64,000 nt of DNA, from the NCBI GenBank assembly GCA_965644295.1, contig CBFFRP010000559.1, forward strand, positions 1-64,000. Reading direction: 5' to 3'. This document shows positions 8,142-60,548 of this stretch, piece after piece. How positions within the stretch are numbered: the stretch's first letter is position 1; the number at the start of each line of letters is the position of its first letter. Origin of the DNA: Paraphysomonas bandaiensis (taxonomy: Eukaryota > Protista > Chrysophyceae). The notes under the pieces were generated by a model, which made no database searches, was not told the origin of the DNA, and worked only from the letters and a program-made list of their open reading frames with translations. Made by a program: the position numbers and the translations under genes.

Positions 8142-10564
8142 CTAGGACGTGTCAGAAGTGCGCTCTGATACCCTGTCTTTCGGATTACTGCTAATGAGTG
8201 TACCCTGTCGTGGAGAAAATCCCGATGGTAATACCAACACCTAGAAGTTCAGCAGTGATCCCTCTGGCATAAATATATATATCCATGGACATGGCACAAG
8301 CATACAAAAAACATCTAGCTCATGCCACGGCACATGCATAAAAGCAAACGTTACATACTATATGCTTCTGCATTGTATGCATGTAGCTGTATATCTATTA
8401 TTCAGACTACGAATCACACACAACATAAAGCGGTCAAGTCATACTGCAATACACACAACTTACCGGCATGGCTTCATTGAAATCACGTACTGCATCGCTA
8501 TGAGCAAAATGGCGATCGAGAATCCCTCGTATTCCAGTGCTCCCAGTATGCCCTTGCATTCCAACCAAAGGACGACCCATTTTCTCCACTTTACTACCGG
8601 AATTAACTTGTTCTACACTCATCGCAGATATATTGGCTCGGGGCTTATCACTTATCACTACCTCACTAGCGGAGCTACCATCATCATTCGCGGAACTATT
8701 TTCGCCGCGATCCACTGCCGAAACAGCATTTGGATGAGATTTGCGGCGATCACCCGTCGTGCCCTGTTTCTTTCTGGGTCGAGAACGTCCTCTCGATGAC
8801 CGCTGCGAGCGTCCTGATGGAGTAGGCAATAGACTCTCTCTCAAATGACCATCAGAATGCCCATTTTCCAAATGGGAATTGAGCTTAATTGTAACCATTG
8901 ACCCCAGTTCACCGCCAAGGAATGGTCTGCACAGGCATTGTTATAAAATATATCACCACTTTACGAGACACACATATAGTGTACCCTACATATACGTCTA
9001 CAAATCAATTTATTACTTGTAGTCGAACGCAATTATGTTAATTGCACCCAATAATGCCATTTCAATGCATATAATGAAATCCTGCAGAGTCGCATCCAGC
9101 GCAGAGTCGTCATACTTCCACCCTGCAACACATCTCATATACACGCACAAACTACAAATACATGTCGATCATGACGAGTATGGTGGAAACAGCATTACCT
9201 GGTGGACTAGCGATGACGTCCAGGCTCACTAGCAAAGAGATAAGCATGCCCTGGACAAGACATGATATCAGAAAAAAAACAGGCATAAATCTTCCTTGCA
9301 ATGTAACATACGAGAACAAGCACATAACAATGACACGAAGCTTAATGTATAAGTTCAAATTTGATGCATATGCATAACACATTCCGCACCTGCCAGAAAA
9401 TGACGAATATTATAGTCTTTATACACAGAAACTTTGGTAAAGGATTGAGGGGAGCAAGGGCCTCTTTGAATGTATAGTAAAAGGAAATCAAGCATGACAA
9501 AGCCAGGGCAATCTAATTCGAAGAAAGTGTTAGATTTCCGCTAGTAGAAATGGAGTATAGTATACGCAAAAATATAATCACAACATGTAGAACTGCCCCA
9601 TTCAGAGAGTATGTCCTAATAGGATAGAGCTATATGTAGCACAACTGTTTATCGTACCGATATATTCGTAGCAACGGTTGCGTAGAAATAGCCAGAGAGT
9701 GGGCTATAGCTCCCTTCGTCATAAGCACCCGCCATTGCTATAATATTAGAAATCAAAAATATCTGATAAAGGTGCTACAAGATCCTCGTATATATTCATT
9801 CACCACCAGGATTGTCGCATACGACACAAACCGCCATACTTACATAATAATAGCGCCAGGATAGCAACAACAGGCTTAACAACACAGTACTACAATATAG
9901 ACAAATGAGTTACTTGTTGCAGAGCAGTGGTCCAGACCTGTAGTGTCCCGAACTTCACAAACCTAATATATAACGCCGACAAAGTGTAACCCACAAAAAA
10001 CATAATAAGTAATATATGTCACAGCAACTTACTTGAGATACTCTTTTCCAGTGGGCATATTTTGGGTCGTGAAAAGGTTGAAGGGGGCCGGGTAGGGCGT
10101 TGGAGGGAGGGTTTCTAGGTAGTCGTAAAGGCAAGAATCGTCTCCGAAGGACAGGAAGCATACCAAAAGGGCAAAGAAAAGGTACAGTACATAGGCCTAC
10201 AAAACATATGACTACATAGCACATATATACATAGAGGGCATGAGCATATCATATACATGTATGTATGTGTGTGTACCTCGTAACAGTCTCGTGCAGTGTC
10301 GATATACACCGCACAAGAAGGAAACAACAGACTCATGACACAGTTGAATGAGTATATCGGGACCATCCATATGATTCCCACGATCTTAGACTGCAGATGA
10401 GGGCTGTGAAAGTAGTGAATGTGCTGCATATACACAGACAGTTATGTACACACGTATAGACATAGAGATACGGAGAGAGGGACCTTATTAATGAGCCATA
10501 GCGATGCAGTGGTTCCCAGTAGAGCAAAACACACAGCGATGTAAACTAAATAATCAAGCACCAT
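8142..10564 (-). CDS. TMEM184 / organic solute transporter alpha (Solute_trans_a) family membrane protein, multi-exon
   Basis: Exons encode HIHYFHSPHLQSKIVGIIWMVPIYSFN, DTARDCYE, KFSVYK and QDFIICIEMAL, plus a C-terminal FAHSDAVRDFNEAMP typical of TMEM184-like proteins. ATG at 10564; last exon ends TAG at 8142. Confidence 0.88.
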
Positions 10565-10776
10565 CTTTATATATGAGCGTCTGTCTGTGTGTGTATGTAT
10601 GTGTCTTAACAGGACAGATGCAGACGCTGGTATACATACACATACACTGTATATACATACATACATTTATACACACAGTGGGCTGTACATGCAGAGTACT
10701 ACTGCTGTATATTGTGGATCTTTGCATATCTACACAGCAGTGAGACTTTAGTGTACCTATTTTTATGCTAAAATCT

Positions 10777-10866
10777 GATTTTAGTCATAATTTCCTACTT
10801 TTTTCATATTTCCCAGATTTTCGTCATAATTTCCTACTTTTCTTCATATTTCCCAGATTTTAGTCA
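10777..10866. repeat. About 40-bp AT-rich tandem duplication in the TMEM184/phosphatase divergent intergenic region
   Basis: GATTTT(A/C)GTCATAATTTCCTACTTTT..TCATATTTCCCA occurs twice, followed by the start of a third unit. Confidence 0.85.
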
Positions 10867-11235
10867 GGTTTTTTTCTAGTTGATGTAACTGCATCTCACA
10901 GCAGCAGTATAGACATACATACACCGCAGCTGCGTGTATATATATACATGTGTGTACATACAGCAGTACAGCTGCAGCGTATGTATGTATGTGTGTGTAT
11001 GTGTGTATATATATGTATGTCTGCTCACTCGATCAACACGACAGCACCCAGTGCATCCCTTAACACTCACATCATCATCAACAACAACAACAACAACAAC
11101 AACAGCAGATCCGCATATCTCCCTTATCACCAACGCATCCATACACATACATCTCTACACACACATACACTCAGAGATATACACAGACACGCACATACAT
11201 ACATACATACACACATACATACAGAGCCTGTAGAC

Positions 11236-13120
11236 ATGTCGAGAGTGATGAACAAGAAGGTGAGGAGCCACACAAGACACACATTTGATGTCATAACTAA
11301 CTCTTATCTATAGAATAATGCAGTTGACTTCGATGAAGAGGCGAGACTGCTGTGGGAGAGACTCAACCTCGACCCCTCTGCACACAAGTACGCCCTCTAT
11401 ATGATACATACATGCATACATGACCCTCTGCACCCCTCTATATGATACATATGTACATACATGACCCTCTGCACCCCTCCATATGATACATATGTACATA
11501 CATGACCCTCTGCACCCCTCCATATGATACATATGTACATACATGACCCTCTGCACCCCTCTATATGATACATACATACATACATACATACATACATACG
11601 TGACCCCTCTATATGATACATACATACATGACCCCTCTGCACACATGTACACCCCTCTCTATGATGTATATATATCTGACCCCAGCTATATATCAGTTTT
11701 ACGAACCGTTCGTGAGAACATATTACATCTATGTATATGACTCCTGTACATGGATTGTATGTGCTATCTCACTGTCCATTAGTATCTATCACTGCACTGT
11801 GTATATGTATGTCCCACTATCCATTTGGATGTATGACCCCTGTGTTGTCTGTGTATGTTACCCTTATGGTTGAATAGTTTAATCCTTGTAATATGAATGT
11901 AGTGTATCTGCACTATGTAGAAATGTGTATGTGCTTTATAGACTGTGTATGCTTAACTTTTATGCTGTCTGTATTTTCAAGTACTGCTTAGAGTATTTAT
12001 ATATCAAGTGTATATATATCTGTGTATTTTTAATCATGTACTCTGCTAATTTTTACTTGGTTGGACAGGCAAGGTAAATGGAACCCATTAGATCCTATTT
12101 GGAGACATCCAGAGGGTGGTGGTATCATATATGTCGGAAATCAAACGGCGGCAGAAGATTTAAATCTTTTGAGAAATTACAATGTCACGCATGGTAAGAA
12201 GCCTGTCTCGTGTGCTAGATGAACCGATACAGCGTAGTGAGTTGTGTATGTGGCCTATTGGCATGTGTTTTCCTGTGTTGTCCTCGAGTGGAATTCAAGT
12301 GTTCACATTGTCTATTTCAGTTGTGAATTGTACTATTGGTGGTTCTCAAATTCCCAATTATCACGAGAAAAGTGGCGCTATACAATATTACAGATTTCCT
12401 GTAAGTGTTGTGTGACCTCTGTGTATCTGCGATACTGTATTGAAATTTCAATAAAATGCTCAGTATAGCTTCCATGGATCAATTTTTCCTTGATGTTTTA
12501 TGTGGCATCTGATTTGTGAGTATATAGATCAGTCACTGGAAGATGTACTGTGATGAAAGGGATCAGAGTATACTAGGTAAAATATATGTACTCCCTTACG
12601 TTCATTGCGGGCACTGGTTGTGCTACTGCGCACGTGTACACACGAATCATTGATCATTCCATGCAGTACTGAGAACGTACTGAAATTATTTGGTTTGTAG
12701 CTTTTACTACGGACTTATTTCAGTTTCTGGAAAGCGCAATTTGCAATGGAACTAACGTAATGGTAAAAATCTCGAAATCGGCAGATTAAATACCTTAACT
12801 TATCGCTTTTGTACTTCAACAGGTTCATTGCTTAGCTGGCGCCCACAGAGCTGGCACAACGGGATGCGCATGTTTGGTTCACTTTGCAGGTATATGAATT
12901 GTTGCTTCAATACTAGACTGTACACACAATGTCTGATACGCACAACACACTGCCTTGTGTACAGTACCAACACAATTGTCACTGACGTTTTCGCGATTTA
13001 GGTATGGATGTTCCAACTGCTATCGCATCTGCAAAGAGATGCCGGCCTATTATTGATCCCATTGGTGGGCTCCCTGAATTCTTAGACCGTTTGTACCGTG
13101 CTGAACACTCCAGAAAATAA
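11236..13120 (+). CDS. Dual-specificity protein phosphatase, multi-exon
   Basis: Spliced product MSRVMNKK...IYVGNQTAAEDLNLLRNYNVTHVVNCT...VHCLAGAHRAG (HCxxGxxR catalytic loop)...AKRCRPIIDPIGGLPEFL...RK*. TAA at 13118-13120. Missed by the ORF track because the exons are short. Confidence 0.9.
11371..11665 (+). repeat. 41-bp minisatellite in intron 2 of the phosphatase gene
   Basis: ATGACCCTCTGCACCCCTC recurs at 11420, 11461, 11502 and 11543, with degenerate flanking units. Confidence 0.93.
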
Positions 13121-15125: not shown

Positions 15126-17840
15126 CTACCACTGTCCAGCAGCAATGCATATAAGCTTGTCCTTCATATATCTGAGATTTACTGGGGTGTGTTTGGTGTT
15201 CCATTTCCTAGCGCATTCCCAGGAGCAAAATTTACATTCTTTACCCACTTGGTTTTTAAATCGATCACGAGTTGTGATTTGGTTATCAAGATGTCCACTC
15301 AGCAGAGGATAGCCTGTTGCACAAGTTGTTGTCATGAGGTAAGATTATATGTTTCGCGCAATATAACCACATGTAAAAATACATAATTGCACACACGATG
15401 TTTCAAGTGCTTGGTAATTTTAAGAAAATTCACAAGTAAACTTTTATACATTATACAACAGATTATAACACACAGGAAATAGAATGCAATAAGTTTAATG
15501 CAAGTTATTGTCCATAGTAGCGCACCTGCATCTACCACTTCAGCTACCACTGGACTCAGGTGATCACCATGAGATGGTAAAGCATTTTCAATATCTAAAT
15601 TCTTCAGTGCTGACGGAATTTTTTTCGATTTCCCCTTGTATCGGTTTCCACACTCTGAGCACTTTTTCTTGCCTCTAGGTTTATGTCTCGTACTGCCTTC
15701 ACCGTCACTATTGCGTTGGCCACGATGAGTGTCGCGGCCTTTACGAGCTTTGTTGCCACGAGCATGTCGATGTGATGATATCTGAGAGGCAGGAATACTG
15801 TCCAACGAACTGTCGTCAGCAAATACGTCACCTTCGCTGCTTATCACGCTATCCAGCGATCCCATAGCTTCATCAGCATGACGTCCTGATGCAGGACGAG
15901 TTTGATGAATATCTGGAAGGGTAACAGCTTGCGGCGTGGAAGAATCATTGCTGTCTCGTTTCATAGATCTGAGTCCATTTATTCCAACAGCAGGTGGACT
16001 ATCATCTACATGGAAGAGGTATATTTTAAAAAAAACTTGTCATATGAAATACAATCGAATACCAATCCACAAAAGGCAGAGTATCCAACTCATTATTGTA
16101 CACATATATCACTCTACTATGACATTACCATTATTCTCAAAGTCCATCGTGTAGGCCATATCGTCAGGATCACCAGGATCTTCACCAAAATTCACCTTGC
16201 TTCCTCTACTTTGATTCCTACTGTTGGCCGTGTTTCTCCTACTGTTGTTAGTGCTTGTAGCTGCGCTTGAATAAGGCCTACTGAGCACCCTGGCCTTTTC
16301 AAGTATCGATTCCACGTTGTTACCAAATTTCTTTTTTAATTCGGATTGCAGCACTTCGATTTCCTTTTTGAGACAGTCGATTTCATACCTCATTTCTGAT
16401 TGACTCTTAAACAGGACTTCATTCTCGGAATTCACGTCTTGAAGTGACACTTCACTGTCTTGGTATTTTTTGGTCAAATCAGAGACCTGAATCTTAAGCA
16501 ATTCAATTTCCTTGATTTTGTCAACTACTTCGGTATCATGTCGGGATGATGATTCCTGTAATTGAGTGTAGTTTTTGTGTATACGATCAATCTCGTAGTT
16601 GGCTGCCTTCAGTTTCATTTCATAGACAGAGTTCATATCGATTTGCTTGCTGAGACTGTCTTTGACAATAGCCAACTCAGCTTCCTTTGATGAATACGCT
16701 TCCTACAATCACATCAGTACATCAGTACTACGTTTAATACATGTCCATACACCAAAGATGCCACACTATCAACAGGGTACGGAAAGAGTAATAAAAATAA
16801 TACAAGACTCACCCGTATACCATCCACATCTGACTGCATATCCTCCATCCTATAATTGGCATCATCTAAATCTTGAGAAAGGCGCTCCACTGAAGACCGA
16901 AGTTCAATGACTAACTCAGCATTTCGAATACTCTGGCATGTAGCAAAATTACAATGATGCGCTGGACATAGAGCAACTAGCCATAGTGTATGTTTTATAT
17001 TTGACAGTAATAATAACGACAATAGCTATCCCACAGTACTACACTCTACTTGCTGTGAGTATCATAGTACATATACCCACCTCTTCATCTGGCTCTGTTT
17101 GCACAGCTCGTTCATGCACAACAGGAATCTTATCAAGAATATCTTGTTGAATCTTCTTCTCACGTTCCTATGAACTCATTCAGTCACTAATACATGCATA
17201 ACATGAGCCGCTATGTACCTCATAGTATTCTTTTAACTGCTTCTGCTCCTCTGATGCTTCTAATAACTTCTGTAAGAGCGCCTTATTCAGTGCCTCCTTT
17301 TCATGGATCGTATCTAATAATTCCGTGTTTTTATATCTCTCATCTTGTAGAGACGCATCAGTTTCAGTTATCTTTTCATTGGTTTCATTTTGATATCTCT
17401 CAAACTGTTGATTCAGTTGATTGTATTGGGTTTGTATGGCCTCATAGTCAGACCTCAATGCAGATGATTTATGCTCATATGAAGCACGTTCTTTCGCAGA
17501 TAAACGAATCTGACGTGAAAGACGCTGTTGCAATTCAAGTCGAGAGTTTTCAAGGTCAATAATCTCATCGCGTATGTCTGTATGAGTCTCTAATTCTCCC
17601 ATCTGTATGTGTATGTATGTATATGAGACCACAGCGTCTATATGATACGAGTGAGTTCATATGATCACATACCTCTGCATTCATATCTAAAGAAGTGTGA
17701 TCATATGATTGGTTACTATGATATGATTGGTTCACTTCATTGAAGTAAATATCTTTTTCTTTTCTTCGTTTTTGTCTGCAGTTTTGTTGCATTAAATAAA
17801 GTCTTGAATCTTCCGTAGCGATCAAATCGAAGTCCGTCAT
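15126..17840 (-). CDS. Uncharacterised coiled-coil protein with a C-terminal split FCS/MYM-like zinc finger, multi-exon
   Basis: ORFs 17565-17852, 17180-17632, 16109-16675, 15332-15964 and 15126-15335 appear to join via GT-AG introns; checked in frame at ENN-G|AT-DSPPAVG and DA-G|GC-YPLL. The N-terminal half is E/K/L/Q-rich with heptad character. The C-terminus has CSEC...FCSWEC. Confidence 0.7.
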
Positions 17841-18588
17841 CCTACAGAACAATCCCTATACAGGTACACAGGTATACAGGTACACAGGTAAAGAGGTCTA
17901 TAGGGACACGTATGATCACTACGAAATAACTTAATAATTGAAATACTTTAATTGAGGGGTAGTGAGTATATGGAAGACCCCTTCACACTTAACATACACA
18001 CAGAAACATTGACACAGACAGTTACTTACAACTGAGGTGTTATACGGTACAGATAATACATACGTATGTATATAGATACAGTCATGTCCCACATACAGCA
18101 GAGCAGTACACTCCGTACAGAGATGTAAAACGTAAACAGACAGTATACACATATATGTACTACTGTACTGTACCGTACTGTAGGAGGTACACATGTACAG
18201 CAGTAGGTACAGCTATGCACAGCAGAGTATTGATGATGATACAAAATCATAAAATCCGTGGTTTTCCTATAAATGTGGGTTTTCCATGCCACTTACCACT
18301 GTACCGCCATGATGACTATCTTTTATGGTCCAAAACTTTTCAGTTTTCTGTTTCCATTTGAATATTAAAAGCAATACATAGAGGCAGAATTCATGGACTC
18401 CATTGTAGAGGATCATATTATAGTAACTATGGCTCTGATTACATCAGTGAATCACTCATAATAAACCCCATTGAGTCATACGAGTAGTGAGTTTCTATTT
18501 GAATTAAACTAGCAGTTATCGTTCCTTAATTCACATACTCTCGAAGTCTCAATAACAACCAATCAAAGTGACTGTATATTCCATCAAT

Positions 18589-20929
18589 ATGTCAAATTCC
18601 ACTGAAAAAAACACTGTATCAAGCTCTATGCTCTGGATACTAATCGGCAGTATCTTCATGGCATCAGCCAATAGCATCCTATACAAACAAGCATTGAATG
18701 CCTTCTCATCCCCTACATCAAACTATGGGTTTTTTGTAGGTCAATTCTCTATATTGCTGTATATTGGACAAGCTGCTGTAGTCTCTGTATTTGTCATATG
18801 GAAAAACCCGCATACATTAAGGGAGATATACAACCTCCCGCAGAGTGTGTATCTATATATGGGAGGGCTGGATAGTGGATCCTCGACATTAGGTGCAATA
18901 GCAGGAGCTTATTGTCCAGGAGAAATGCAAACAATACTGAATCAAATGGTTATACCCTTAACGATGATTGGTGCCTTTACGTTTCTTGGATCACAATTTG
19001 AGAGGTATGACTGTATTACAATCTCTACAGCCGGTGTCTGACGGACATGACTTGTAGATATCAGATCTATGGCAGTGTGTTGATCCTCATTGGAGCAGCA
19101 GTTGCATCAAGTGATTATTTGTTTTATCCTAGTCATCATGGGTCGCATATTGATCCTTCTGCTGATGCTGATGCTCCTGATGATAATCAGGTATCTTAAC
19201 TATGCATGTGGATGTGTCTATCTATACATATGGTGCATAACATGCATGTATGTGCAATGCACAGACTCACAGTGGCGGCATTGATCTACCAGTGGCCATA
19301 TCCATCTATCTCATATCAGTGGTCCCCTCTGCACTGTCAAACATATACAAAGAGCGTAAGATGAAGGAGTTAGATATGAATGAAGTGCACACATCAACGA
19401 TCGTATCTTTTTGGCAGCTGTGGATCGGGTTTATATTTCTGCCAATGCTGTCCCTTCCATCTTTAGGTACAACTCGAACCCGTTATGGAAATATGAAGAA
19501 AATGCTGTATTTATTATACAAATGAACACGAACAACATGCTGTGCTCTCTGTTTTGTTACATGATAAAACTGCCGTATGCTGCCCACCTGTACCATTGTA
19601 TTTCTGAAGTTGACATATGTATCCTGTATGGCAGTTGTCGCTTTCAGTAACTTTAGTTTATCAGGTGGGCTATCGTATGAACAGATGACATCTCAGCTCT
19701 CTGATGGATACACTTGTTTTACTGGGGTTAATCCACACGATTCTAACGGCAACTGCTCCAGTGCAGCTTTTTACCTGATGGCGTATATATTAGTCAACTT
19801 CTTCTACAACATTTTGTTATTAGCCATAACGAAAAGAGGGAGCGCAGTGTTACTGGTTATGTCTCAGGTATAGAACTTATGAAGAACGTATTGTACGTAC
19901 ACAATTGCGCCTTATTGTAGTACAAACGGTTCAATCTTAAGCCTTCACTGAGGTGTTGTTTAAATGAAATATGTTAGCAATGTATTTGTTATCTGATTGT
20001 GAAATTCTATGAAATATGGGCTACGTTGACACCTTGGCATGTTCATCATTTATTTAATTATCATTTAGGCATTATCACTTCCTCTTACCAACATAGCATT
20101 TACCCTGACACCCCTTATGGGTGATGATGCGGAGCCGTTATCAATAATGGATCTAGTTGGGCTTGTTCTAGTATGTATTGGCTTTTTGGCCTATAGTGGT
20201 TTTGGGTTTGCTCCAAACTTTATGGTGGCTCAGGTAATACTTGAATGTATATAAATATGTTTTATGGGGGATTATCTGAAGTATATCGTGGTACAGTATG
20301 AATATGCTCTCATAGCTGTTATCGATTTATATAGGGGCCTCCAGGACAAATGGCCTATGCCCATTTCGAAGACCATAACGAAGTCATTGTGTCCACGAAG
20401 GTGGCAACTGATCCACAAGAGCTGGCTGACTTTATTGTGGGATCCATTCTTCAGAGCATGACCATTGCTGATGCAAAAGGTGAGTGCATGATTATATAGT
20501 AATGCATTGCATTGTCGTGTGACATGTACAGACCACACTTACGATTAATATGTAGATGAGGAAAGTGGGACATTGGCATTAGAAGATGATAAAACATCGC
20601 CACTGCGGGCAAGTACGGCAGCTCTAGATGTGCTGAAGCAAGCAACTGTAATTGTTGAACGCCATGTGAATGCAATGAAAAGGGGCCTGGAGACAAAGCA
20701 TATGACTACCCCAGAGATAATGCGGCGATACAATACAGTTACATCATCTCCTCATACAGGCAAGCAGATGAATGAACATATTGTTGCAACACAAGTGAGC
20801 CTCATCGAGGAAAAAATATCCCGATCACGAGATAATACACCAATGGCTCAGAGAAATCATGATGACTCAAGTCCATTATTACCAGGCCGTAGATGGGTGA
20901 AAGATAAAAGCAGCACCTACACATCTTGA
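18589..20929 (+). CDS. CRT-like (chloroquine-resistance-transporter-like, DMT superfamily) transporter, multi-exon
   Basis: About 10 hydrophobic segments. Motifs QTILNQMVIPLTM, SVVPSALSNIYKE, VSFWQ, luminal DGYTCFTG..C, VNFFYNILLLAITKRGSAVL and ALSLPLTNIAF are characteristic of CRT/CLT proteins. Confidence 0.88.
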
Positions 20930-21419: not shown

Positions 21420-23527
21420 TTACAAATTCTCATCTGCGATTGGTCCCTTCGATGATGTCAGCACTGTCGTCGCTTTCTCTTTGAGAAGGTACTTCTTTAC
21501 GTGTACCAAAATAGATACTGTCAGAATACATACTACAAAAACAAGAACTAGCAAAATTGACATCAATATAGTTAGCCATTCTGTATCATCATCGTCGTCA
21601 TCATCATTGTTGTTATTGTTCCCCTTATTGGAACTAGAATCATCGTCGCTGTTATATGTCACTTTATAGGACACGATCCTCCAATTAAGTGTGTATTCAT
21701 CATAAGTCTGAACTTCTGCCGTAAATCCGTCCAACTCCATGACATCACCGTCACTAATTGTCACGGTATTTCTCAAATACTTCGCAGATGTCGAAATATA
21801 ATAATCCTCCACACCAGATACATCGTAAGCCTTAAACTGGGAAGTCGAGTTAGCGACATTGGCTTGGCTAGAAGTAGCCAGCATATCAAAGTCTTTGCTA
21901 TCACCCAACGATAATTCGGTTTCAGTAATATACACACCAGCACCATTAGAGTTATAATCCGCAAGAATGCTATCAATTTCATTCAGTTTGAAATCTGTTC
22001 CCACCACGCCAATGAAAGTCTGGTCATCATATATGGGGATTGCATAGGTGATTCCAACATCACCACTGTTGGCAAAGACATAAACCTGTGAATATAACCC
22101 ATGCCCAGCGCTCTTAGCACTTTTATACCATGTTCTTTGACGTGGATCGTATTCTTTGGCAACTACCGGCCCAGAGCTCGACTTGCCAGTTTCCGGGTCA
22201 ACGTAGTACAGGTACCGAGTTGTATCTGGACTCACGTCAGCAAGGCGCATGGCTAGATATTTCAGGTCCTCTAAATATCCCGTAAATGTCCCGTCTTCAT
22301 ATCCAATATATGACGACCGCACAGTGGGAAAATTTTTGCTTGTTGCGTACATAAAATCTTGAACACCATTTTCGAGGTCAATGCCGCTGACAGAAGAGTA
22401 GGGCAATATACCAAGGTACATCGCTCGCTCTATGAGCCCCCCTAAATCAATGCACTTGAGGAGAAACTCGTCAAGGTCTCCGCTAACAAGGCCCAAAATA
22501 TCAGATTCAACCTCAAAATCACAGTTTATATCGTCTGAATTGGGCTCAACGACAACGATATACCAGTGAAGGGTATCGTGCTCCTAATTCATTATCGTAA
22601 TGATCTGGTCGTCATGAAGCAAAGTCTGATCCGATCTGAAGTAATTTAACAACAAATATGATGAGCTATCACTGATAATATCATTCAAAGAATCCATTGC
22701 ATTGATTCTTTGCGCCGAAGTGCTTACAACGGGAGATTTATCGGATGTCGCCACAAGATAACCATCACTTTCCATAACATAAGCGACAGCCTCTCCACTT
22801 ACAGAATTCTCAAGCATAGTACTTATAGTACTAAGATGGTAAACCATGGTTGTTACACCACTAATATTCTCAGATGCACTAGAATATTCCGGGATACCTA
22901 GAGAGGGCTGAATTGACAGAGTGTTACCTGTAGTCCCAGTTATGTTTGGCCACGTGATGCCACAGGTATACGTGCCCTCCAGGTCTGCCGAACAAGCATC
23001 TATAGCATCCTTATAATACGGTAATTCACGAGGATCAGAGAGCACGCTAAAAAGCATCGGACCAGAGGAGTCACCATTTAAAGCATTATAAGCATAAGAC
23101 TGCATATAACCCGTACCAGATGTACTGTCCTCGCGCCAATACAATACAGACTTGACGGGATCGTATCCGACATACACACCATTTTCAAATGCAATACCAT
23201 AAGAATCATCCTCTCCAAAATTAAGTAAAAGATCATATAAAGTTCGCTGGTAGGGTGGCGACATGTCATTAATTTGATCTGCAGGGGCGGAGTAGTTCAT
23301 ATAGTTGACTATACTGTCCATCACATTCAGCGCTTCATTCGGAATCTGATTATAAGAGATATCAGTCAAAACAAAGACCACAAATGCATTATGACCACCT
23401 CCATGTATAAGGATAACTCTTGATGGATCCCAACTGCAATGGTGTCTTCGATTTGGATTTGACATTCACTTGCCAATGCAGTCCACATCATTCCTAATAC
23501 AACAATCATTCCATTGTATTGCATCAT
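21420..23527 (-). CDS. Signal peptide + two dCache_1-like sensor domains + single TM; interrupted by one in-frame TAG (possible pseudogene, readthrough or sequence error)
   Basis: Exon 1 MMQYNGMIVVLGMMWTALASEC...LYME splices (GAG|GT, CAG|) to IPNEAL. ORFs 22584-23465 and 21420-22496 are in the same frame, separated by TAG at 22584-22586. Domain 2 has YIGYEDG, YDPRQRTWYK, GITYAIP and GVVGTD. TM segment WLTILMSILLVLVFVVCILTVSILV. Confidence 0.8.
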
Positions 23528-23839
23528 ATTGCACACTTCAATTGTACAATGAGTTTAATTGACTATCTATCTCTTAGATATGTAAGAGATGTTGTTGTTC
23601 TGCATGTCTTGCATTGCAATCATGGCATTGTGTTGCATGCATGCATGATGTGTGCATGTTACCATGACAAAATTGTCCTCAACTGGAAAAAAAAACGAAA
23701 AGGTATCTAATTAACAAATCATCTTCTTTCAAATAATAATGATTGGATGTAGTTTAATGTGAGTCTGGATATATACATATGGATCTAGCCTGTTATACTG
23801 CTGTATACACAGTAGTATGAGAAGGTGTGGACATACATC

Positions 23840-23984
23840 TATGTATGTATGTATGTATGTATGTATGTATGTATGTATGTATGTATGTATGTATGTATGT
23901 ATGTATGTATGTATGTATGTATGTATGTATGTATGTATGTATGTATGTATGTATGTATGTATGTATGTATGTATGTATGTATGT
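23840..23984. repeat. (TATG)n microsatellite, about 36 units
   Basis: Read directly; lies about 310 bp upstream of the dCache gene start. Confidence 0.98.
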
Positions 23985-24729
23985 TTCAGTTGGCCATTCG
24001 GTAGACCAAAAACGCGCTGGATTTTCAAAAAAAATACAGAATTTCGCTCATCCACTGGAATAAATTAGAGAATTTAGACCTTAAACACAATATCCTGGAG
24101 TTTCGACATATAAAGTGTATAAATATCCAGTATATTTGATCAAAAATCCAGCCTATATTACGGTTACAGTGAGATTGCAGACAAAGATGCATAGAAATGC
24201 AGAGGGGACATAGGAATGAGCGTACAGTGAAGGTTACTGTTGTTATGAATTGCTTCTATAGATATGAATGTGTTGTTGAGAGCAGCTATTGCAGATATAT
24301 ATGTCTGTGTTGACTGGAAGTGTGCACCTCATCATCTAACTGTATATCCACATCGTATCGTATCATCTGCTGTGGTTAACTTCTGTGTGATGTCATTACA
24401 ATCCACTAACTATCAACAACTATTACTACTAGTACTGTAACAGTAACTGCAGGCACTCATCTGTTTTCTCTCAGCTGATATACGGATCCCGCTGTGAGAG
24501 TCACCCCACTGCCCCTTCAGTGTTCGCCTTTACAAAGATTATGCGGGATTTCTCATAGCTATGCAAGACGTATGTATGTAATTCACGCAGATTTTAGCCA
24601 GGCCATGTTCACCTTCCCATCCCCTAACAAAGATGCATCGCTCAGTATAGGCCTAGCATTGATTTGGCTGAGACCCCTCCTCGCCCAGAATGCGCGGGGT
24701 TTCTCGTAACATGTATGAAACATGCCAGT

Positions 24730-25472: not shown

Positions 25473-28609
<3,137 letters not shown>

Positions 28610-28895
28610 TTTACTATAGTTGAATATCGAATTGAGGTGATTATGAGCCCTCGTCTAGGAGATGAACGACTTATGGAGGGATAGACACACACAGACATGT
28701 GTATGTATGTATATACAGACGAACAGACTAACAGACATACGAAGATTGTAGTAGTTATTTTTTGTCATCGTCTGTAGCCCAAACATTCTGATTATAGAGT
28801 ATCTTAAATAGTCATACTTACGATGTCCAGTTAGAGAAACTGAAAATGAATTATGAATACGTATGTGTGGACGCACGTATCTATGTACAAACGTA

Positions 28896-29357
28896 TGCAT
28901 GTATGTAGGTATGTATGTATGTATGTATGTATGTAGGTATGTATGTATGTATGTAGGTATGTATGTATGTATGTATGTATGTACGTATGTATGTATGTAT
29001 GTATGTATGTATGTATGTATGTATGTATGTATGTATGTATGTATGTATGTATGTATGTATGTATGTATGTATGTATGTATGTATGTATGTATGTATGTAT
29101 GTATGTATGTATGTATGTATGTATGTATGTATGTATGTATGTATGTATGTATGTATGTATGTATGTATGTATGTATGTATGTATGTATGTATGTATGTAT
29201 GTATGTATGTATGTATGTATGTATGTATGTATGTATGTATGTATGTATGTATGTATGTATGTATGTATGTATGTATGTATGTATGTATGTATGTATGTAT
29301 GTATGTATGTATGTATGTATGTATGTATGTATGTATGTATGTATGTATGTATGTATG

Positions 29358-29389
<32 letters not shown>

Positions 29390-29555
29390 TGTATGTATGT
29401 ATGTATGTATGTATGTATGTATGTATGTATGTATGTATGTATGTATGTATGTATGTATGTATGTATGTATGTATGTATGTATGTATGTATGTATGTATGT
29501 ATGTATGTATGTATGTATGTATGTATGTATGTATGTATGTATGTATATATGTATG
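28896..29555. repeat. (TATG)n microsatellite, about 650 bp, between the divergent CDPK and RAD51 genes
   Basis: Read directly. Degenerate edges (TAGG and TACG variants) and one internal interruption near 29360. Confidence 0.98.
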
Positions 29556-37842: not shown

Positions 37843-37924
37843 GGCGTGGATGTGCCTATAGAACCCTCATCCATTAAGAGTGAGTATATATATACACACA
37901 CATCTCATTATATACATATCAACA

Positions 37925-40703: not shown

Positions 40704-41496
40704 GCGAGAATTTCTCAGATGATCGTGTGCGCTGTTTATATTTATGGAGTATAAGCAGTTTGCGTGGTGGTTGTGCATTGACTATCGTTTGGTATACTAT
40801 CATGGATTGAGCAGTCCGTACTTGTGTAGAGGCCATGGGTAGAATGAATAGCGCTTTCATAGCAGTTTTAATAATTGACTGTTCGTCAATGTGCGTTGCT
40901 TTGGTGCGACACTTACACTTAATTAGCACTACTTCAGTATCTACGGGTACTATTTGTATTATTGAAATATTATAGTTATCTTTTATTTAGAGTTAATCTA
41001 GTATCTAGTACAATTGCCATTCCTTAAAAGCTTATGTATAAATCCCATTGATTTGAAAAGTTATTTTGATTTCCTTCGCTCTATCACTAAAAGCAAACAC
41101 CGTTAGCAGGAAGAATGTTGATATGTATTGTTCCGATGTCCTCTTAAATAAATGCATATAATGATTTTTGTCAGCTTATACAATTGTACGTTGTATGATA
41201 TCCACGCAATATGATTGGTGCGTAGTGTGCTACGTTCTGAAAATATTTGGCGTCGCTAGAGGTGTCTGAGGTGCTATGTACTATTTAATGTACGTTGCAT
41301 AGACGTTTTATTAATACGTTGGCACATTTATGAAGCCTAGGAACTTCAATGAAATCATCGCAGCAGCTACACAAATCGTGCCAAAATACTTCTTAGTACA
41401 AGCTACAGAAACACATTATCTTACGAAATATATGCCATACACTTGAAAAAATACCCGCACAGTAAATGGCGCCATCACAGCAAAGCAGCTTCACAC

Positions 41497-43628
41497 CTAG
41501 TACGTATACATCAATGTTGTTCCTGGCAGTGCCCCAGGGGGTACTGTTAACTGCATCATCACCCCATTCGGGCTCTTAACTTGAAGCACAGTTCCGGGGG
41601 GGCAATTCGGAGGAACCGTAATCTATAGCACATTTACACTGTAAGGTAGCCATAGAACAAAATACAGTGATGGCTATATTTATCAATTGCATTGTAACAC
41701 CAATCTATGTAAATAGTGGAGTACCTGAGCTTGTCTCGACTGACCACCTGCAGGAGGAGCTCCTGGGGGAGGAGCATATGCAGGCGGAGGCTGGTTATAA
41801 GCAGGAGGGGGAGGAAGTCCCCCCGTCGCCGATGAGTAATTAGAGCCTTGACTATGAGTCTGGGAGAGCATGTGCGACACATTTCCCACGCTTCTGGTAG
41901 GTTTCCCATCAACATAACCTGCCTGAGATTCTCGTGAACGCTGTTCCGCTTCGCTTATAATGTTCCTTGCATGAACCTTCTCGTTCAGAAAGCGAGAGTA
42001 CACGTCCACATAGAGCGAGGCATGCGGATTGCGTTCAAAGTAGAACCTATATATAAATGAATACGTTAGTTGTAATCAGTACTTAAGAACTCAATCACCT
42101 ATACTCCTCGCTTGTGTGGGTTCTCCCGAGCAAATTATCCATGGTGTATTTAGAAAATGGCAAATTTTCATCGAGTGCGTCCAAGTCCATGGGGTTAATT
42201 GCTGCCACCAGCTGAGCCACCATCCAAAGTCCCTTGGTAAAGGGAAATGCCGGGCCTTGGTCAGTGAGTACCTCAATCTTTTCTGCGTTGTAGTCATCCA
42301 GCTCAGCGGTAAATGGGGCCACTTCTTCCACCTTAAAAAATTAAGTCGTGAAAAAGTCCATACATATATACATACGACGGTACACGTACAGAGATTGTTA
42401 CTGTTAAGTACATACAATGCTGCAAGTTCCTTATATATCTTCACTATACTCACTCATATGTATTCTAATATGCAGGACATTATGGCTTTTCAAAACACAC
42501 AATGTGAGGTGCATATATATAGCGTACCTGCTTCATCCATTCGACCTCTGAGTCCTCATTACTGCATGAGAGAAACGTAACGGGATTCTTGTCCGGTTGT
42601 GCTCTATTGATAATAAGTTCAGACACTGCATGTACAGGTCTATCTGTTGGCACCCCATCCGTTAATAAATAATGCATTGTAGGTTCTGAATGTTTAGAAG
42701 CTTCTTGAAATGCTTTTGACAAGACTGTGTATGTAGGTGTCTTGTATCGCACATCAATGCTTGCAAATGTATTCCTGATAGCATCATGACACTCTCTTTT
42801 AAAGTCATCAATTGATTTTCCTGTTCTGTTAAAGGTGAGAATGTTCTCAGCATTTAAGAATTGGATCTGAATGGAGTATGTAGGTATGTATGCCAAGATA
42901 TCCAGCATGACATGCAGTCTGTTCTCTGCTTCTTGCCAGCGTGTCATTTGCACATTTGGGGTACGAGAAATAGCCGGTTGACCATTTGATGGTGGTGTGA
43001 ATAATGATGGACAGCCTTCTGTAAGCATGACGTCTGTAGGAGCTCGCATGGATCCTGAGAGACGAAGGAATCATATGGAGATATATGTACAGATGGATAT
43101 GTACAGATAGATGTGTATTGAAGTACATGGAGAAGTGTATATGTACATATATTTATATATTCATGTATATATGTACAAGTGTATATGTACAAGTGTATGA
43201 GTACCTGAATCATCGACTATGAAGTTGAGTCGATAGTGTCTCAATGCACTCAATTTACTTATCAATCCCACTGGAACTTCATACTGAATGAAGTAATCTG
43301 TGAGTCCCTCCAATAGTTCGCCTCCATCAAGCTCTTGATTGGAATGGAATGAATTGAGATATGTATCATCCTGCATATTTTCCATAGCAGATATTGTCGA
43401 ATCAGACATCTGCATAGGAGTCCCTGTGCTCTCTGATTGGATAGCAGTAGCTTCAGCAATATCTGATAATGAAGACACTACAGCAAGAGTGTCCCCTGAA
43501 GATCCAGAAGTATGTGAATTATTTGAAGTACTCGAAGGATCTGAATGTGCTTTCACCCAATTCAGATATTCAGGATTTTGTTGCATAATTCCATTAACGA
43601 AAATGTATTTCTTGGGTTTACTTGACAT
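41497..43628 (-). CDS. von Willebrand factor type A (vWA) domain protein with Pro-rich C-terminus, multi-exon
   Basis: MIDAS motif FIVDDSG|SM spans an intron; also TRWQEA, TP and YLLTDGVP. Pro-rich linker, then a terminal exon ITVPPNCPPGTVLQVKSPNGVMMQLTVPPGALPGTTLMYTY*. Confidence 0.82.
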
Positions 43629-43838
43629 GATTGAAGATGTGAAGGGAGAGATATTGTGTTTTGAGGTTATATGTATATGTATGTGAATCTGTCAGTCGAT
43701 AAGGATCCATATATAACACATTTATATATACATATACACACAACACTGCAACAACACACATACCTCAACGTCACAGTGTTCTCACACTAGTGCTACTAGT
43801 GACATACATATGTATACAGGTACACTGTACCCATATAC

Positions 43839-44381
43839 ACATACATACATACATACATACATACATACATACATACATACATACATACATACATACATAC
43901 ATACATACATACATACATACATACATACATACATACATACATACATACATACATACATACATACATACATACATACATACATACATACATACATACATAC
44001 ATACATACATACATACATACATACATACATACATACATACATACATACATACATACATACATACATACATACATACATACATACATACATACATACATAC
44101 ATACATACATACATACATACATACATACATACATACATACATACATACATACATACATACATACATACATACATACATACATACATACATACATACATAC
44201 ATACATACATACATACATACATACATACATACATACATACATACATACATACATACATACATACATACATACATACATACATACATACATACATACATAC
44301 ATACATACATACATACATACATACATACATACATACATACATACATACATACATACATACATACATACATACATACATACA

Positions 44382-44415
<34 letters not shown>

Positions 44416-44861
44416 CATACATACATACATACATACATACATACATACATACATACATACATACATACATACATACATACATACATACATACATACATAC
44501 ATACATACATACATACATACATACATACATACATACATACATACATACATACATACATACATACATACATACATACATACATACATACATACATACATAC
44601 ATACATACATACATACATACATACATACATACATACATACATACATACATACATACATACATACATACATACATACATACATACATACATACATACATAC
44701 ATACATACATACATACATACATACATACATACATACATACATACATACATACATACATACATACATACATACATACATACATACATACATACATACATAC
44801 ATACATACATACATACATACATACATACATACATACATACATACATACATACATACATACA

Positions 44862-44890
<29 letters not shown>
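43839..44890. repeat. (CATA)n microsatellite, about 1.05 kb, between the divergent vWA and dioxygenase genes
   Basis: Read directly; a single C>T interruption near 44412. Confidence 0.98.
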
Positions 44891-44892
<2 letters not shown>

Positions 44893-45023
44893 CTCTGTAT
44901 ATGGTATAGAGTACTGCAGGAGTGTACGTGTGTACAGTATGTTGTGGTGGTCCTGCGGCAGTGTATGTATGTGTTTGTTAAGAGTGTTCTCTATAGACCA
45001 GCCCTTCATCTTCTATCCTCATA

Positions 45024-47902
45024 ATGGACTTCATTGACAGTGACAGTGACACAGAGGGTCATGAGGACTCATATATGTGTGTTGTCTATAGAGAATTGTT
45101 TAAATCTATTGTACAGTTGCGACCCTCTACGAAACAGCGATCGGAGGACGCATCACACACTGAGATAGCTCTTAATGTCCTTGTTATTGGCACCATAGAG
45201 GTGAGAGGATCGAGACACACATACACATACATACACATACATATATATGAGTGTATACGTACATATACGTGTATATATACATACATATGACTGCATAGAC
45301 ACACTCACATATATATATACACATATACATACATACATGCATACATACATGCATATATAGATCTAATTTTCAGTTTAGATTTCAGATTTTTTGAATAATT
45401 TATCACTGATAAAGTTACTGAGAGTCCAATCGATTGATTCATATGAGGATTTGATTGCATCGGATTGTATTGACAGCGACTTGTTTGATGTTGTTGTGGA
45501 TACTATTCATGCATATGACTGCAATAGTAATACATACGATGCAGAGGCCTATACGTCTGTTGTCAAGAGATTATATGCTCGTATTACACCCGGCGGCATA
45601 CTTTTGACAACTGAGCATACCAACTCGTCAAATAGTGTTCTTAATTCGGCACACCTTTGGACTTCTTCATCTACGTTGGATATGTCAAGAGATAGTTTGT
45701 TGACTGTGCCCCCAGCAAGCTCAGCGTTCATTTCAACAGATGGGTCTCCGTTGCCGTCTCCTTATGATCATATTCTGTTGGTTCATAGAAAACGCTTAGC
45801 GATATGTGTGAACACTACACAAGCGCTTTATTGGGGAAGTCAAGGGGTTTCGATGGAAAGTGACGGAGAGGCAGATACTGGTTCATTGGCGCTAGAAAGA
45901 ACGTTCCTTGAAAGTATTACTGTGACACCTTACGTGAATCAGGAGCGCTTGACCGCTTTGGACAAGAAGAAAGCCGCTGAGTCACTGGTCGAGCATGGAG
46001 TTTGTATCATTAGAAGTCATTTTTCAAAAAAGGTAATATGTGCTGTGCATAGTTAATGTATTTGTTGTGATATAAGGTAGTGTATGTATTGACGTGGTTA
46101 CTTTATTGGCTATGATTTGTATTTAACCTGCTACGATATACACTACAATTGTGTATTATGTGTGCATAGTTCATGTACCAGTTTACGTACTACGTATCGT
46201 AGTCATGTGTGACGAAATATGGGGGTATGCATGATGATTGGGTAGTAATGACCTTGTGAGCCATAACTTGACACGATATACATGTGTAGATGGTTTTAGA
46301 GTGGGGAGAGGCAGCTCTAGTGGATTTTCAGTATGCTTATGATGAACTGAAGACTTCTAAAGGTTAGCATGTTCCATACGATTCTGTGTTACTGCGATAT
46401 GTATATTATGACTGCTGCTCCCATTTTTTGGTCACATACACCTGATTTCCGTTTCATTTCTGTAGGTATAGATCTTGACAACCCAGTAGAGGGTCAGGTA
46501 TGTGAATTTGTCACTTTTGGAGAGTGGTAGTTTTTTTGACAGAAACACTCTTGCAGATCATCAATAATTTTCATGAACTTTCAATGAGAGAAGCACGTCG
46601 TGTCGATTTACGAAATGGCTTAGCTATAAAGCGCAAAATAAAATCACACCCAGATGCATTCCGCTCAGATGACATTAAAAGTATTCTTGATGTAGTCATG
46701 AACCCAGAAGGTCCTCATGCTGGTGGAAACTGGGGAAGGTATATCTTTGACTGCATGTAGTAACCGCGATGCCTATGTTGTTTAGTTATGCACTAATGCC
46801 GAAAGCCTCATATCAGTGTGGTTTAAGAGTCATCTCTTGTACTAGGTGGAATTTCAATGGAGGAGGTCCTAATGCTGGGCCGCCACCTCTTACTCAAGGG
46901 GAACCAGGGGCAGTGATTTCGCTACCTGGATGCATGGATCAAACTATACATGCCGATACACCACATCTATGCACGTTATATCATGTACGATACAAGTACT
47001 TCCCCATGAAAACAGTATATATTGGCTGCATACGTTGGCTACCGTATCATTACTACTATTTCACGCTGTCGCCTTACTTCATATGAACAGTGCTACATAG
47101 TTTATATACGCTAATACCGCCCTTTATATATATAGCTGCCACCACACTACATCAACATGTTCATGATTGCTGCTGACCCGCACCAACAATTAAGGGATGA
47201 TTCAAATGGCACAACTGGTTGTGAGTGCTGCGACCTTAGGTATGTGGATCTCGCTTTCCTTAATTATGTATTCTCTAGAACAGTCTATGCGAGTTGTTTG
47301 TATAGTTCTATTTAGTAATATGGACCGCAGGGTAGGACAAACAGCCTTTGTTATGGGATCTCATATGTTACCAGTTACTGAACGTCTCATGACTACTGGT
47401 GAAGCAGGTATGTGGTGGGTGTGTATCCTTACAACATACCCGGGAGTCAACTATATCGAAGCAAAACTTATACTTGTAACATACATGTGTAGGGCTATTT
47501 AGAGGGTATATGTCAAGTAGTGTTGTACATGTTCTATGATGTGACGTGGGATGTCTAGCACTTGAAATACGTTGTATCGTTCCATGTACATGATACCCTA
47601 TACATAAAGTATCTGCAGCTGATTCGTGTCTTGTATGCTCTTCGTAACTGATATGTGCAGGAGAAAAAGAGCTAATGCTTAGACTAGTTAGACCCCACAT
47701 GAAACCAGGAGATGTGCTTTTATTTGACTGTCGTGTACTTCACTTTGGCCTGTCGAATAGGAGTTCAGGTACCTGTGATAGCGCCGTACCTGCAAGTACC
47801 AATGGGACCAGACGGCCAATCATATATGTTAATCACCACCAGACTTGGTTTAATGACCCTAAAAACTGGAATGATAACGAGAAATTATTTCCTACAAATT
47901 AA
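45024..47902 (+). CDS. PhyH-type 2-oxoglutarate/Fe(II) dioxygenase with a degenerate methyltransferase-like N-terminal region, multi-exon
   Basis: EHGVCIIR, AVISLPG..QTIHADTPHL (HxD), GQTAFVMGSH, PGDVLLFDCRVLHFGLSN (distal His) and RRPIIY (2OG-binding Arg). N-terminus has VLVIG, FDVVVD and ITPGGILL. Confidence 0.85.
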
Positions 47903-58300: not shown

Positions 58301-58759
58301 CTCCATGTTGAATATGAAAATTCAGATACACAGGAAACAACCCAAGAATAAAAACAAGATACGACAAATATCTCAAGTATACATGTATAAATACCACTAT
58401 ACATTAGCACTGATGTATGTATGGTATGTAATACATCCCATTCTATATATAATACGGCTACATCGCTACCTTTCTAGCTCGTTTGATCGTAGTAATCATA
58501 TTAGGAGCCATTGGATGAGCACATAATGGACATCCAGGATCACATCCTTTGCAAGTAATAAAGCATCCAGTGATAAGTTTCAGTATCTGTGATAGTGTTG
58601 AAACTCACCTGGTTTAGCTTGATCAAGACATCGAATTAATAATTGTTTAATTCCAATCGATAATTGACAATGAGAACATATCAAACATCTTCCTTCACAG
58701 ATTACATGAATGGCATCATCAATACGTGAACAAAAGCTACAATTAGCATCATGTGACAT
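49353..58759 (-). CDS. Large uncharacterised multi-exon protein: N-terminal RING-like zinc finger, low-complexity middle, C-terminal RI-type leucine-rich repeats
   Basis: Start MSHDANCSFC...CEGRCLICSHC...CPLC. Exons were chained in phase across most junctions from about 55980 to 52815 (e.g. VTMLQ|IRKLEEW, ERPT|VTANL). LRR exons: SLRGNGISDFGMVEL, LDLSWNRI, LQVVSLAYNRMGDRG. The 3' end near 49353 is tentative, and not every junction was checked. Confidence 0.62.
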
Positions 58760-59562
58760 ACATACAACACTATTGATAACTACACAGATACACAGCAACT
58801 TGATTAACGATACAGATTCATTATATAATAATCAAATATTTTAAGAAATAGATTTATATGAAGATATTGTGTGTCATGATGATGGTAGTGTGTGTGATGG
58901 GTACTTTAAGTGGGGAGCGTATGGATAGTCAGCATCTTATTTTTCGGAAATAAATTGAAGCAAATATTCTCTATAATACTACAATACAACTACAGCTGGA
59001 ATACACATAATTGTTGTCTCAATATTAGAGGCATCTTAGAACAAAAATATACCAAGGCTCTCATATATATACACACCTCTTTGCAATGTAACAGATAGAT
59101 AGATCCGTATACGGATAGTGATCCGTTATCGGGTTAGACTTATCTATCTCATAGGTGTTGTATATCCGGTTGACGGATCTTTATCCGCTACCGTATGATC
59201 TCATCCCAGTTTATAACTCCTATAAATTCTCAAAAATTATATAAAATATCTAAAAAACACATAAAACTCTAAAAACCTAGATATTTCAATGTAAAAATCC
59301 TTCATATTTTCTAAGTACGATGACATTCTCGACCTCATCAGCAGCAGATTTGAAATTTTCATTAAGGGTATGTCTGTAGTGTCCCCCTGTGGCCATATAC
59401 ATATACATACATATACATGTATAAGGTATGGTAGATCCCGTACAGTCCCTCCACTGTCATGTAGTGAACCATATCTACAGGGATTTCTATACATTAGCAT
59501 TCATTCTCTTAACATTCACTAGAAGATAGTATGATATATTAACCAGAGGGTTTTAATAGATC

Positions 59563-60548
59563 ATGATACTCATGAATACACGTATTGGAGTGACCTTCAT
59601 CACCCTCTTCATAGCAGGTAACATCATCCTCTCTTTATCCCTCTATTCATCCATACATACATACCCATCCATCCATATACATACATCCCCATATCTCATA
59701 TATACATATATACAGGTGTAACTTATCATATGGCCAATGAAATTACACCACTTAATATTGAAGGAAATTCAACAGAGATTCAAATTGCATTACAATCAAA
59801 TGAGAATACTGATAGTCAAGAGTTGGGTCAAGGGGAGTGGGAGTGTACATGTGATCAATTGTTTTTCCCGACTAGTATACCAACATCATTACCATCATCA
59901 GGGCCAACATATGCACCAACATATGCACCAACATATGGACCAACATTTTCACCAACATTTCAACCAACATCACCACCGACTTTTCAACCTACAATACGAC
60001 CTGTATTACCTAAGTCACCTACTGTTGCACCGAGTATTCGTAGTGCTAATCAACCTTCCAAATCACCTACTAGAAGTCCTACATGTTCTCCCACTTTGAC
60101 CGTTTCTCCTACACAATCACCAACCACTACGAGCCCAACACCTGTACCGACCTCGTGTCCTTCAACTGTGCCAACCACTTTCCCTAGTGGTACCCCTACT
60201 ATAATGCCTAGTGGCCAACCTACTTCCCTTCCATCCTCGCTCCCAACCGGATGTCCTTCTAGAGTACCCACTGGACTACCAACTGGTTTGCCATCAGGTT
60301 TTCCAACTGTCTCCCCCAGCGCCCCTACTCCAGCTCCTGTAGACAACTCCCCTACATTCACTCCTACTCGTGCTCCAACCTTCAAACCTACGGCCACTCC
60401 AACTTTCAAACCGACTTTCGCGCCTACTAGTGCTCCTACCCTTCAGCCTACTGTCGTGGCTATGGTCCCCGTAAGACGGCGCAGAGGAATACCTGAGGCA
60501 GGCGATGAACACAACTCTCCTGAATCAGAGAGAAACATAATTGTATAA
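59563..60548 (+). CDS. Secreted Pro/Thr/Ser-rich mucin-like (PTxxPT repeat) protein
   Basis: Exon 1 MILMNTRIGVTFITLFIAG (signal-peptide-like) splices in frame (G|GTAAC...CAG|GT) to ORF 59730-60548, which has PTYAPT, PTFQPT and PSGQPT repeats. Confidence 0.8.

Follow-up and report, generated by a model that had tools for sequence, protein, structure and literature searches.

ATAC tetranucleotide arrays beside gene starts in Paraphysomonas bandaiensis, a probable promoter-gap microsatellite

Variable tandem repeats are present in about a quarter of yeast promoters, and short tandem repeats are likewise described from human promoters (PMC5622345, PMC3899988). Repeats of poly-AC and of poly-CG in promoters form Z-DNA, absorb supercoils, and disfavour nucleosomes, in an account that does not cover the ATAC unit (PMC5622345). 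Of the six eukaryotic MT-A70 families, AMT1 and its partners are tied to N6-methyladenine (6mA) at ApT dinucleotides whereas METTL4 is unrelated to that mark; AMT1-type 6mA sits downstream of the transcription start site (TSS), and species without AMT1 serve as negative controls (PMC12695648). Here we analyze arrays of the ATAC tetranucleotide in a 64,000-nucleotide stretch of the chrysophyte Paraphysomonas bandaiensis (the window, positions 1-64000 of contig C559 in a 669-contig, 62.5-Mb assembly) and across the rest of that assembly. A first-pass annotation had proposed that nearly every start codon in the window lies in or beside such DNA, and that the tracts may act as promoter islands comparable to CpG islands or as a substrate for 6mA. 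The arrays belong to the 5' side of genes and to one motif family, are nearly pure, lie outside the mRNA, and have no preferred strand upstream of genes. No description of ATAC promoter arrays was found in the literature searched.

The 5' bias was measured on 73 genes (28 Ras, 24 UQ_con, and 21 proteasome) whose loci came from family searches that ignored repeats; each gene was taken with 1.5-kb flanks, and positions were counted relative to the domain matches. Strict tracts, defined by at least 60% ATAC-family 4-mers across 24 bp, were found upstream of 18 of the 73 genes and downstream of 1 (sign test p=8e-5), and loose tracts upstream of 29 and downstream of 1 (sign test p=6e-8). The metaplot of ATAC density rose to 0.18-0.20 at 200-700 bp upstream of the domain start and was flat at 0.05 through 1.5 kb downstream, so the enrichment at 5' over 3' ends that the first-pass annotation had predicted was borne out for these domain-anchored genes. 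Its wording of "nearly every start codon" was too broad, in that tracts mark 25-40% of genes, but promoters without a tract do carry a diffuse excess of the same words. In the 44 tract-free genes, ATAC-family words reached 0.082 per base at 100-700 bp upstream as against 0.051 downstream (Wilcoxon p=2e-5), a density 1.6 times that of the 3' flanks. With the arrays masked, two-unit ATAC words were still 13-30 times commoner upstream than downstream.

A shortage of non-coding DNA on the 3' side was rejected as the cause of this bias: the downstream flanks held 64 kb of non-ORF (open reading frame) DNA compared to 39 kb upstream, yet contained 12 times fewer array base pairs (599 versus 7,263), which corresponds to 0.19 array bp per non-ORF bp upstream and 0.009 downstream. 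The idea that promoters are hot spots for repeats in general was also rejected, given that tandem repeats other than ATAC (period of at least 7) numbered 45 upstream and 29 downstream (p=0.08). Together, these two controls indicate that the 5' bias belongs to the ATAC motif and not to repeats generally. Relative to the anchored gene, upstream arrays read as ATAC in 16 cases and as GTAT in 13, and counting again within the window gave 3 versus 2; a uniform sense-strand ATAC polarity of upstream arrays is thereby refuted. Enrichment specific to head-to-head gaps was considered as well. An antisense ORF lay beyond the array in 7 of 8 informative cases, but tract-free genes were similar, with a divergent upstream neighbour in 31 of the 37 for which a neighbour could be called, by codon-usage strand calls that are weak. 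Tracts were more frequent among proteasome genes (14/21) than among Ras and UQ_con genes combined (15/52; Fisher p=0.004), an excess that we treat as a lead towards a link with housekeeping function or expression.

Genome-wide counts were obtained from (ATAC)6 registers (143,147) and (ATAC)7 registers (138,854); the number of pure runs with 6 or more units (24 bp and up) is the difference of the two, 4,293. These runs total 164,600 units, or 658 kb, equal to 1.05% of the 62.5-Mb genome; their number fits the roughly 25% of sampled genes with a tract and excludes a tract at nearly every gene. In the window and the sampled loci, the ACAT family makes up 94-98% of the bases in perfect simple sequence repeats (SSRs) of at least 20 bp, and mono-, di-, and trinucleotide runs are almost absent. 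The arrays are 98-100% pure and keep a single phase, and decayed ATAC relics surround them. Their flanks are abrupt and mutually unrelated, which argues that the arrays were not carried by a mobile element. The second SSR motif, (ACCT)n, differs from ATAC by one substitution and adjoins ATAC blocks. Upstream of three genes, (ACCT)n/(TACC)n blocks interleave with (ATAC)n in the same arrays, namely at two proteasome loci (L067 on C297 and L087 on C296) and one Ras locus (L026 on C410); ACCT is a variant unit spreading inside ATAC arrays.

The position of arrays relative to transcripts was read from contigs of three RNA/cDNA-type data sets, together with one DNA data set of another strain, that cover 36800-42790 of the window. 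The mRNA contigs of the CCT chaperonin subunit (ATG at 37925, plus strand) have their 5' ends at 37885-37890, 43-48 bp past the end of a (TACA)9.5 array on the plus strand (37805-37842). Exon 1 of this gene ends at 37934 and is followed by two small introns and by intron 3 (38168-38502), and the poly(A) tail begins from 40889. For the adjacent unnamed gene G11 (ATG at 43628, minus strand), a contig reaches 760 nt beyond 42790, and a 149-nt intron 1 (43056-43204) was read from the sequence; this contig extent and intron 1 place the mRNA 5' end at ∼43699, leaving a 5' untranslated region (UTR) of 71 nt before the ATG. A TATA-like TATATATAAA box lies at ∼43720-43729, 21-30 bp upstream of the G11 5' end, and the edge of a 1,052-bp array is found beyond the box, ∼140 bp upstream of that 5' end. 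Pure arrays thus lie just outside the transcripts and adjoin core promoters. Over the arrays as a whole, lengths range from 20 bp to more than 1 kb. On the interpretation favored below, the arrays sit 40-300 bp upstream of the points where transcription starts, in DNA that is itself untranscribed and in many cases separates a head-to-head gene pair, with decayed copies in the first long intron. The second strain differs from the window by ∼2% upstream of CCT (36800-37798) and by ∼0.25% across CCT and G11 (38357-42790). Its contigs reach both CCT tracts and carry a 21-nt insertion at 38401 by the intron tract, in a comparison in which array letters were masked.

The window itself has a base composition of 39% G+C and a CpG observed/expected ratio of 0.68, and its top 4-mers are the four rotations each of ATAC and GTAT. 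Six strict tracts total 1,919 bp, or 3.0% of its length. Background ATAC-family 4-mer density was 0.059 outside the ten intervals that the first-pass annotation had singled out, and eight of the ten exceeded every same-size interval outside them: 10200-11660 (0.20), 17600-18220 (0.14), 23520-23985 (0.37), 28690-29720 (0.69), RAD51 intron 2 (0.33), 37800-38450 (0.23), 43060-45360 (0.54), and 59390-59715 (0.20). The other two were weaker, with 19190-19270 in the top 1% only and 58760-58900 (0.071) not enriched. Convergent gaps (0.03 and 0.07) and late introns (0.07-0.10) were near background, as had been described. So was the strict alternation of purine and pyrimidine: the fraction of neighbouring bases that switch class was 1.00 over pure arrays and 0.53 in the background.

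One array in the window, (ACAT)263 on the plus strand at 43838-44889 (43839-44891 by Tandem Repeats Finder), is 99-100% pure and occupies with its 1,052 bp the head-to-head gap between G11 and the unnamed gene G12, an ORF from 45391 on the plus strand; a decayed ATAC tract at 45215-45359 (plus) lies directly upstream of this first G12 ORF. A (GTAT)n array of ∼160 units with TAGG/TACC variants (28904-29546, plus; 166 units at 28893-29555 by Tandem Repeats Finder) is placed between the ATG of a calcium-dependent protein kinase gene, CDPK (28608, minus), and that of RAD51 (29759, plus). The (TATG)36 array at 23838-23979 (plus; 23840-23984 by Tandem Repeats Finder), which is 99% pure, sits 373 bp upstream of the ATG of a double-Cache (dCache) receptor gene, in the tandem gap that follows the 3' end of CDPK. 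Further tracts were seen elsewhere. The head-to-head gap between a TMEM184-like gene and a plus-strand gene contains (ATAC)8 at 11568-99 and degenerate ATAC-type tracts at 10619-72, 10956-11012, 11168-230, and 11542-623; a 41-bp minisatellite of 4.7 copies (11393-11585) also lies within this gap. The head-to-head gap between a coiled-coil gene (minus) and a CRT-like gene (plus) shows weak ATAC-type enrichment along with ACAGGTAC repeats at 17600-18220, and a weak tract with a density of 0.20 at 59386-59715 (plus) lies upstream of a plus-strand ORF at 59730.

Gene identities and strands were assigned by Pfam searches on single-exon ORFs, one exon per search. At 46-59 kb, a codon-usage gene finder was too weak to yield gene models. 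By Pfam, the window encodes an ABCG-type transporter (2182-7072, minus), with a 79-bp minisatellite of 3.6 copies (7336-7626) upstream of it; the TMEM184/Ost-alpha-like gene (N-terminal exon at 10118-10435, minus), which is head-to-head with the plus-strand gene that starts at ∼11613; the CRT-like transporter (18568-20929, plus); the dCache receptor (21420-23465, minus, ATG 23465); CDPK (minus), with the kinase start at 28156-28491 and the EF-hand region at 25922-26206; RAD51 (plus), with exon 2 ending at ∼29973; and the CCT subunit. The coiled-coil gene extends to ∼17850 on the minus strand. The ATG codons of RAD51 and of CDPK, the product of which starts MGNSQ, were read from the sequence. 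Exon-wise Pfam searches and this reading agree with the gene anatomy given previously, both in identities and in strands.

Tracts also occupy 5' introns, in line with the earlier description. Three RNA data sets show splicing of CCT intron 3, which contains a decayed TACA tract at 38169-38342 (density of 0.31), and G11 intron 1 (43056-43204, minus) consists of a TACA-like tract (0.26). RAD51 intron 2 (29974-32861, plus, with an approximate 3' boundary) starts directly with a 20-bp satellite of ∼117 copies at 29981-32314, continued by a 49-bp variant to 32596, that fills almost all of the intron. The unit of this ∼2.6-kb satellite is ATAACCCTATGCACATACAT, and it includes TAACCCTA, matching the telomere repeat CCCTAA. 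Words on the sense strand favored ATAC over GTAT in each of four cases (4/4): 94 versus 9 in CCT intron 3, 29 versus 10 in G11 intron 1, 768 versus 173 in RAD51 intron 2, and 15 versus 9 in the CDPK 5' UTR intron. The 5' splice sites found locally have the GTAYGT form, and a sense-strand (GTAT)n array within a transcript would present a row of GTATGT splice donors and would probably be selected against, which may be why only ATAC is tolerated in introns. The lack of any such strand rule upstream of genes agrees with the arrays there being untranscribed.

Word counts in array-masked upstream DNA yielded a separate promoter motif, TRTACTGCTGTAYA, with core CTGCTGTA/TACAGCAG and consensus TRTACTGCTGTAYATA. 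Among the 73 genes it occurred 61 times upstream and 7 times downstream; 41 of the 73 had it upstream and 5 downstream (p=4e-8). Both orientations were represented (33 and 28), mostly at 200-850 bp upstream of the domain start. Copies of the 9-mer ACTGCTGTA in the window numbered 6, against an expectation of 0.78, and four of the six are in promoter gaps (10701, 10959, 18196, and 23797), the last of them 33 bp from the (TATG)36 array; the coiled-coil/CRT-like gap has copies of CTGCTGTA/TACAGCAG at 18094 and 18196. The arms of the motif, TRTAC-TGCT-GTAYA, carry the ATAC/GTAT unit. Seeding of arrays at the TACTGCTGTA motif was nevertheless rejected, as the motif lay within 80 bp of only 5 of 46 array edges compared to 7.8% of control windows. 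A different word, TATTGCAA/TTGCAATA, characterizes the 3' side, with 40 occurrences downstream and 6 upstream in the gene sample; it is often found inside the near-palindromic TATTGCAATATATTG. Its copies in the window are at 26661, 27181, 35194, 37016, 47975, 56281, and 63550, and it may be an element of 3' ends or of convergent gaps.

We consider the ATAC tracts to be, more probably than not, a lineage-specific microsatellite of promoter gaps that acts as a spacer beside the promoter and is possibly active in torsion or nucleosome placement. According to the twin-domain model, negative supercoiling arises behind a starting polymerase. Arrays would be born from the ATAC/GTAT-rich words of promoters and grow by slippage or unequal exchange, and they would expand only in the negatively supercoiled DNA behind initiating polymerases. 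Growth at promoters and not at 3' ends would then follow, since negative supercoiling would be confined to the DNA behind a starting polymerase. Under torsional stress, a tract of strictly alternating purines and pyrimidines with 75% A+T would be the likeliest to unwind or to adopt a non-B form. If active at all, the arrays would serve as a spacer of variable length, taking up torsion and disturbing nucleosomes next to the promoter. They are probably not themselves the promoter, and probably not a 6mA island either.

Several points weigh against this interpretation. The role in torsion and nucleosome placement is what we infer, not what we observe. Z-DNA forms more easily in (CA)n and (CG)n repeats, of which this genome has next to none, and the second motif, (ACCT)n, is not an alternation of purines and pyrimidines. 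Tracts are found in only 25-40% of promoters and span a 50-fold range of lengths, so that a by-product fits as well as a function. The gene sample comprises three families with 1.5-kb flanks and is anchored on domain matches instead of mapped transcription starts, and the two starts used above are ends of assembled contigs, not mapped cap sites. The CCT exon matched 30 metagenome loci at 78-85% identity, none with an ATAC tract, although these short-read contigs of uncertain kinship provide weak evidence. The dCache exon had no match in the metagenomes, and a contig search for other strains or relatives found no record.

Methylation of the ApT sites in the arrays, as an epigenetic mark of promoters, is very improbable. 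The arrays do offer one ApT per 4 bp, and an MT-A70 gene is present, but a six-frame search of the whole assembly returned this one MT-A70 match (L031:940-2298, on C68) and no gene of the AMT1, AMT6/7, METTL3, or METTL14 type, so that the AMT1/MTA1-complex writer for which the first-pass annotation had suggested a search did not appear. Among PDB structures, this ORF matched METTL4-type 7cv6 (E=3e-26) and no other entry at a threshold of E<=10. The genome search also found no D12/Dam or N6_N4 methyltransferase families, and it detected one weak cytosine-methylase fragment. With no METTL3/METTL14 pair detected, the genome may lack the usual mRNA m6A writer or encode one that has diverged too far for detection. 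Position is a further obstacle: the AMT1-type mark is placed downstream of the TSS, with species lacking AMT1 as negative controls (PMC12695648), whereas the pure arrays are 43-140 bp upstream of mRNA 5' ends and only decayed intronic tracts lie downstream. Outside the arrays, ApT in the gene sample was only 1.09 times as frequent upstream as downstream, and CpG was depleted to a ratio of 0.85 (0.0256 versus 0.0301). These two ratios do not describe a CpG-island analogue by composition, and the 6mA-substrate idea is left unsupported.

A selected promoter architecture is a possibility that we hold in considerable doubt. The arrays would be bound by a lineage-specific factor, or be needed to keep one class of promoters, housekeeping and often bidirectional, open or insulated, and would thereby be to microsatellites what CpG islands, or (GA)n with GAGA factor, are elsewhere. 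One might then expect, tentatively, that pure long arrays are kept upstream of that class, where they would absorb torsion, bar nucleosomes, or bind a factor, with array length tuning both neighbours. The restriction of nearly all SSR content to one motif, a 5' bias that other tandem repeats do not share, the very high purity, the proteasome excess, and the ATAC/GTAT unit in the TRTAC-TGCT-GTAYA arms all agree with selection. It is harder to reconcile with most promoters having no array, with lengths of 20 bp to more than 1 kb, with array edges being no nearer to the promoter motif than chance, and with the tract-free CCT orthologue contigs of relatives. A genome search for Z-alpha domains was empty, which carries little weight because its control was empty in every genome as well. 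At the other extreme, a quirk of repair or replication, such as weak repair of 4-nt loops, might expand ATAC seeds at any site, the seeds merely chancing to be words of promoters, with no effect on expression. The array-masked excess of two-unit words upstream, the decayed relics around arrays, and the alternation of ATAC blocks with (ACCT)n blocks one substitution away agree with such a process, and a mouse study reportedly links Msh3 to tetranucleotide expansion (PMC10317118). A repair defect set by loop size should, however, expand other tetranucleotides too, and none was seen; arrays of kilobase size, at 40-140 bp from a transcription start, would hardly be free of any effect; and the bias towards the proteasome family argues against randomness. 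We regard a purely neutral origin as improbable, and the spacer microsatellite described above remains the explanation that we favor.

If these arrays affect transcription, thousands of promoters in a free-living protist would carry a fast-mutating length dial built of a single motif, and the genome would provide a natural system for how repeat length, torsion, and nucleosomes set expression and for the insulation of bidirectional promoters. Even as a by-product, a 29-to-1 5' bias of one motif is a clean read-out of a promoter-specific mutational process. The arrays can also serve the annotation of this genome as practical markers of gene orientation, together with the TRTACTGCTGTAYA motif and the word TATTGCAA of the 3' side.

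Among described systems, AMT1/MTA1c-dependent 6mA at ApT in ciliates, green algae, and early fungi (PMC7145601, PMC12695648) resembles the arrays in involving ApT-rich DNA near gene starts, and it differs in its writer family, which was not found in the assembly, in the location of the arrays upstream and not downstream of the TSS, and in that ApT outside the arrays is not enriched. The (GA)n repeats bound by GAGA factor in Drosophila and the CpG islands of vertebrates are similar in that a class of simple sequence flags a subset of promoters; here a bound factor is only putative, CpG is at 0.85 times the downstream level, and array length is far more variable. With Z-DNA-prone (CA)n/(CG)n promoter repeats such as those at CSF1 and HO-1 (PMC5622345), the arrays share strict alternation and a location on the upstream side of transcription starts, in the zone where negative supercoils accumulate, but the ATAC unit is 75% A+T, this genome lacks the classical Z-forming repeats, and our literature search found no experimental Z-DNA data for the ATAC unit. 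The variable promoter repeats of yeast and human are alike in being concentrated in promoter DNA and in affecting about a quarter of genes. Those repeats lie in or beside nucleosome-depleted regions and vary in length, as would be expected of the ATAC arrays by analogy. The P. bandaiensis case stands apart from them in that one tetranucleotide accounts for more than 94% of the SSR DNA and 1% of the genome, in that arrays exceed 1 kb at 99-100% purity, and in the near-absence of mono-, di-, and trinucleotide repeats; as a kind of promoter microsatellite, it is unusual.

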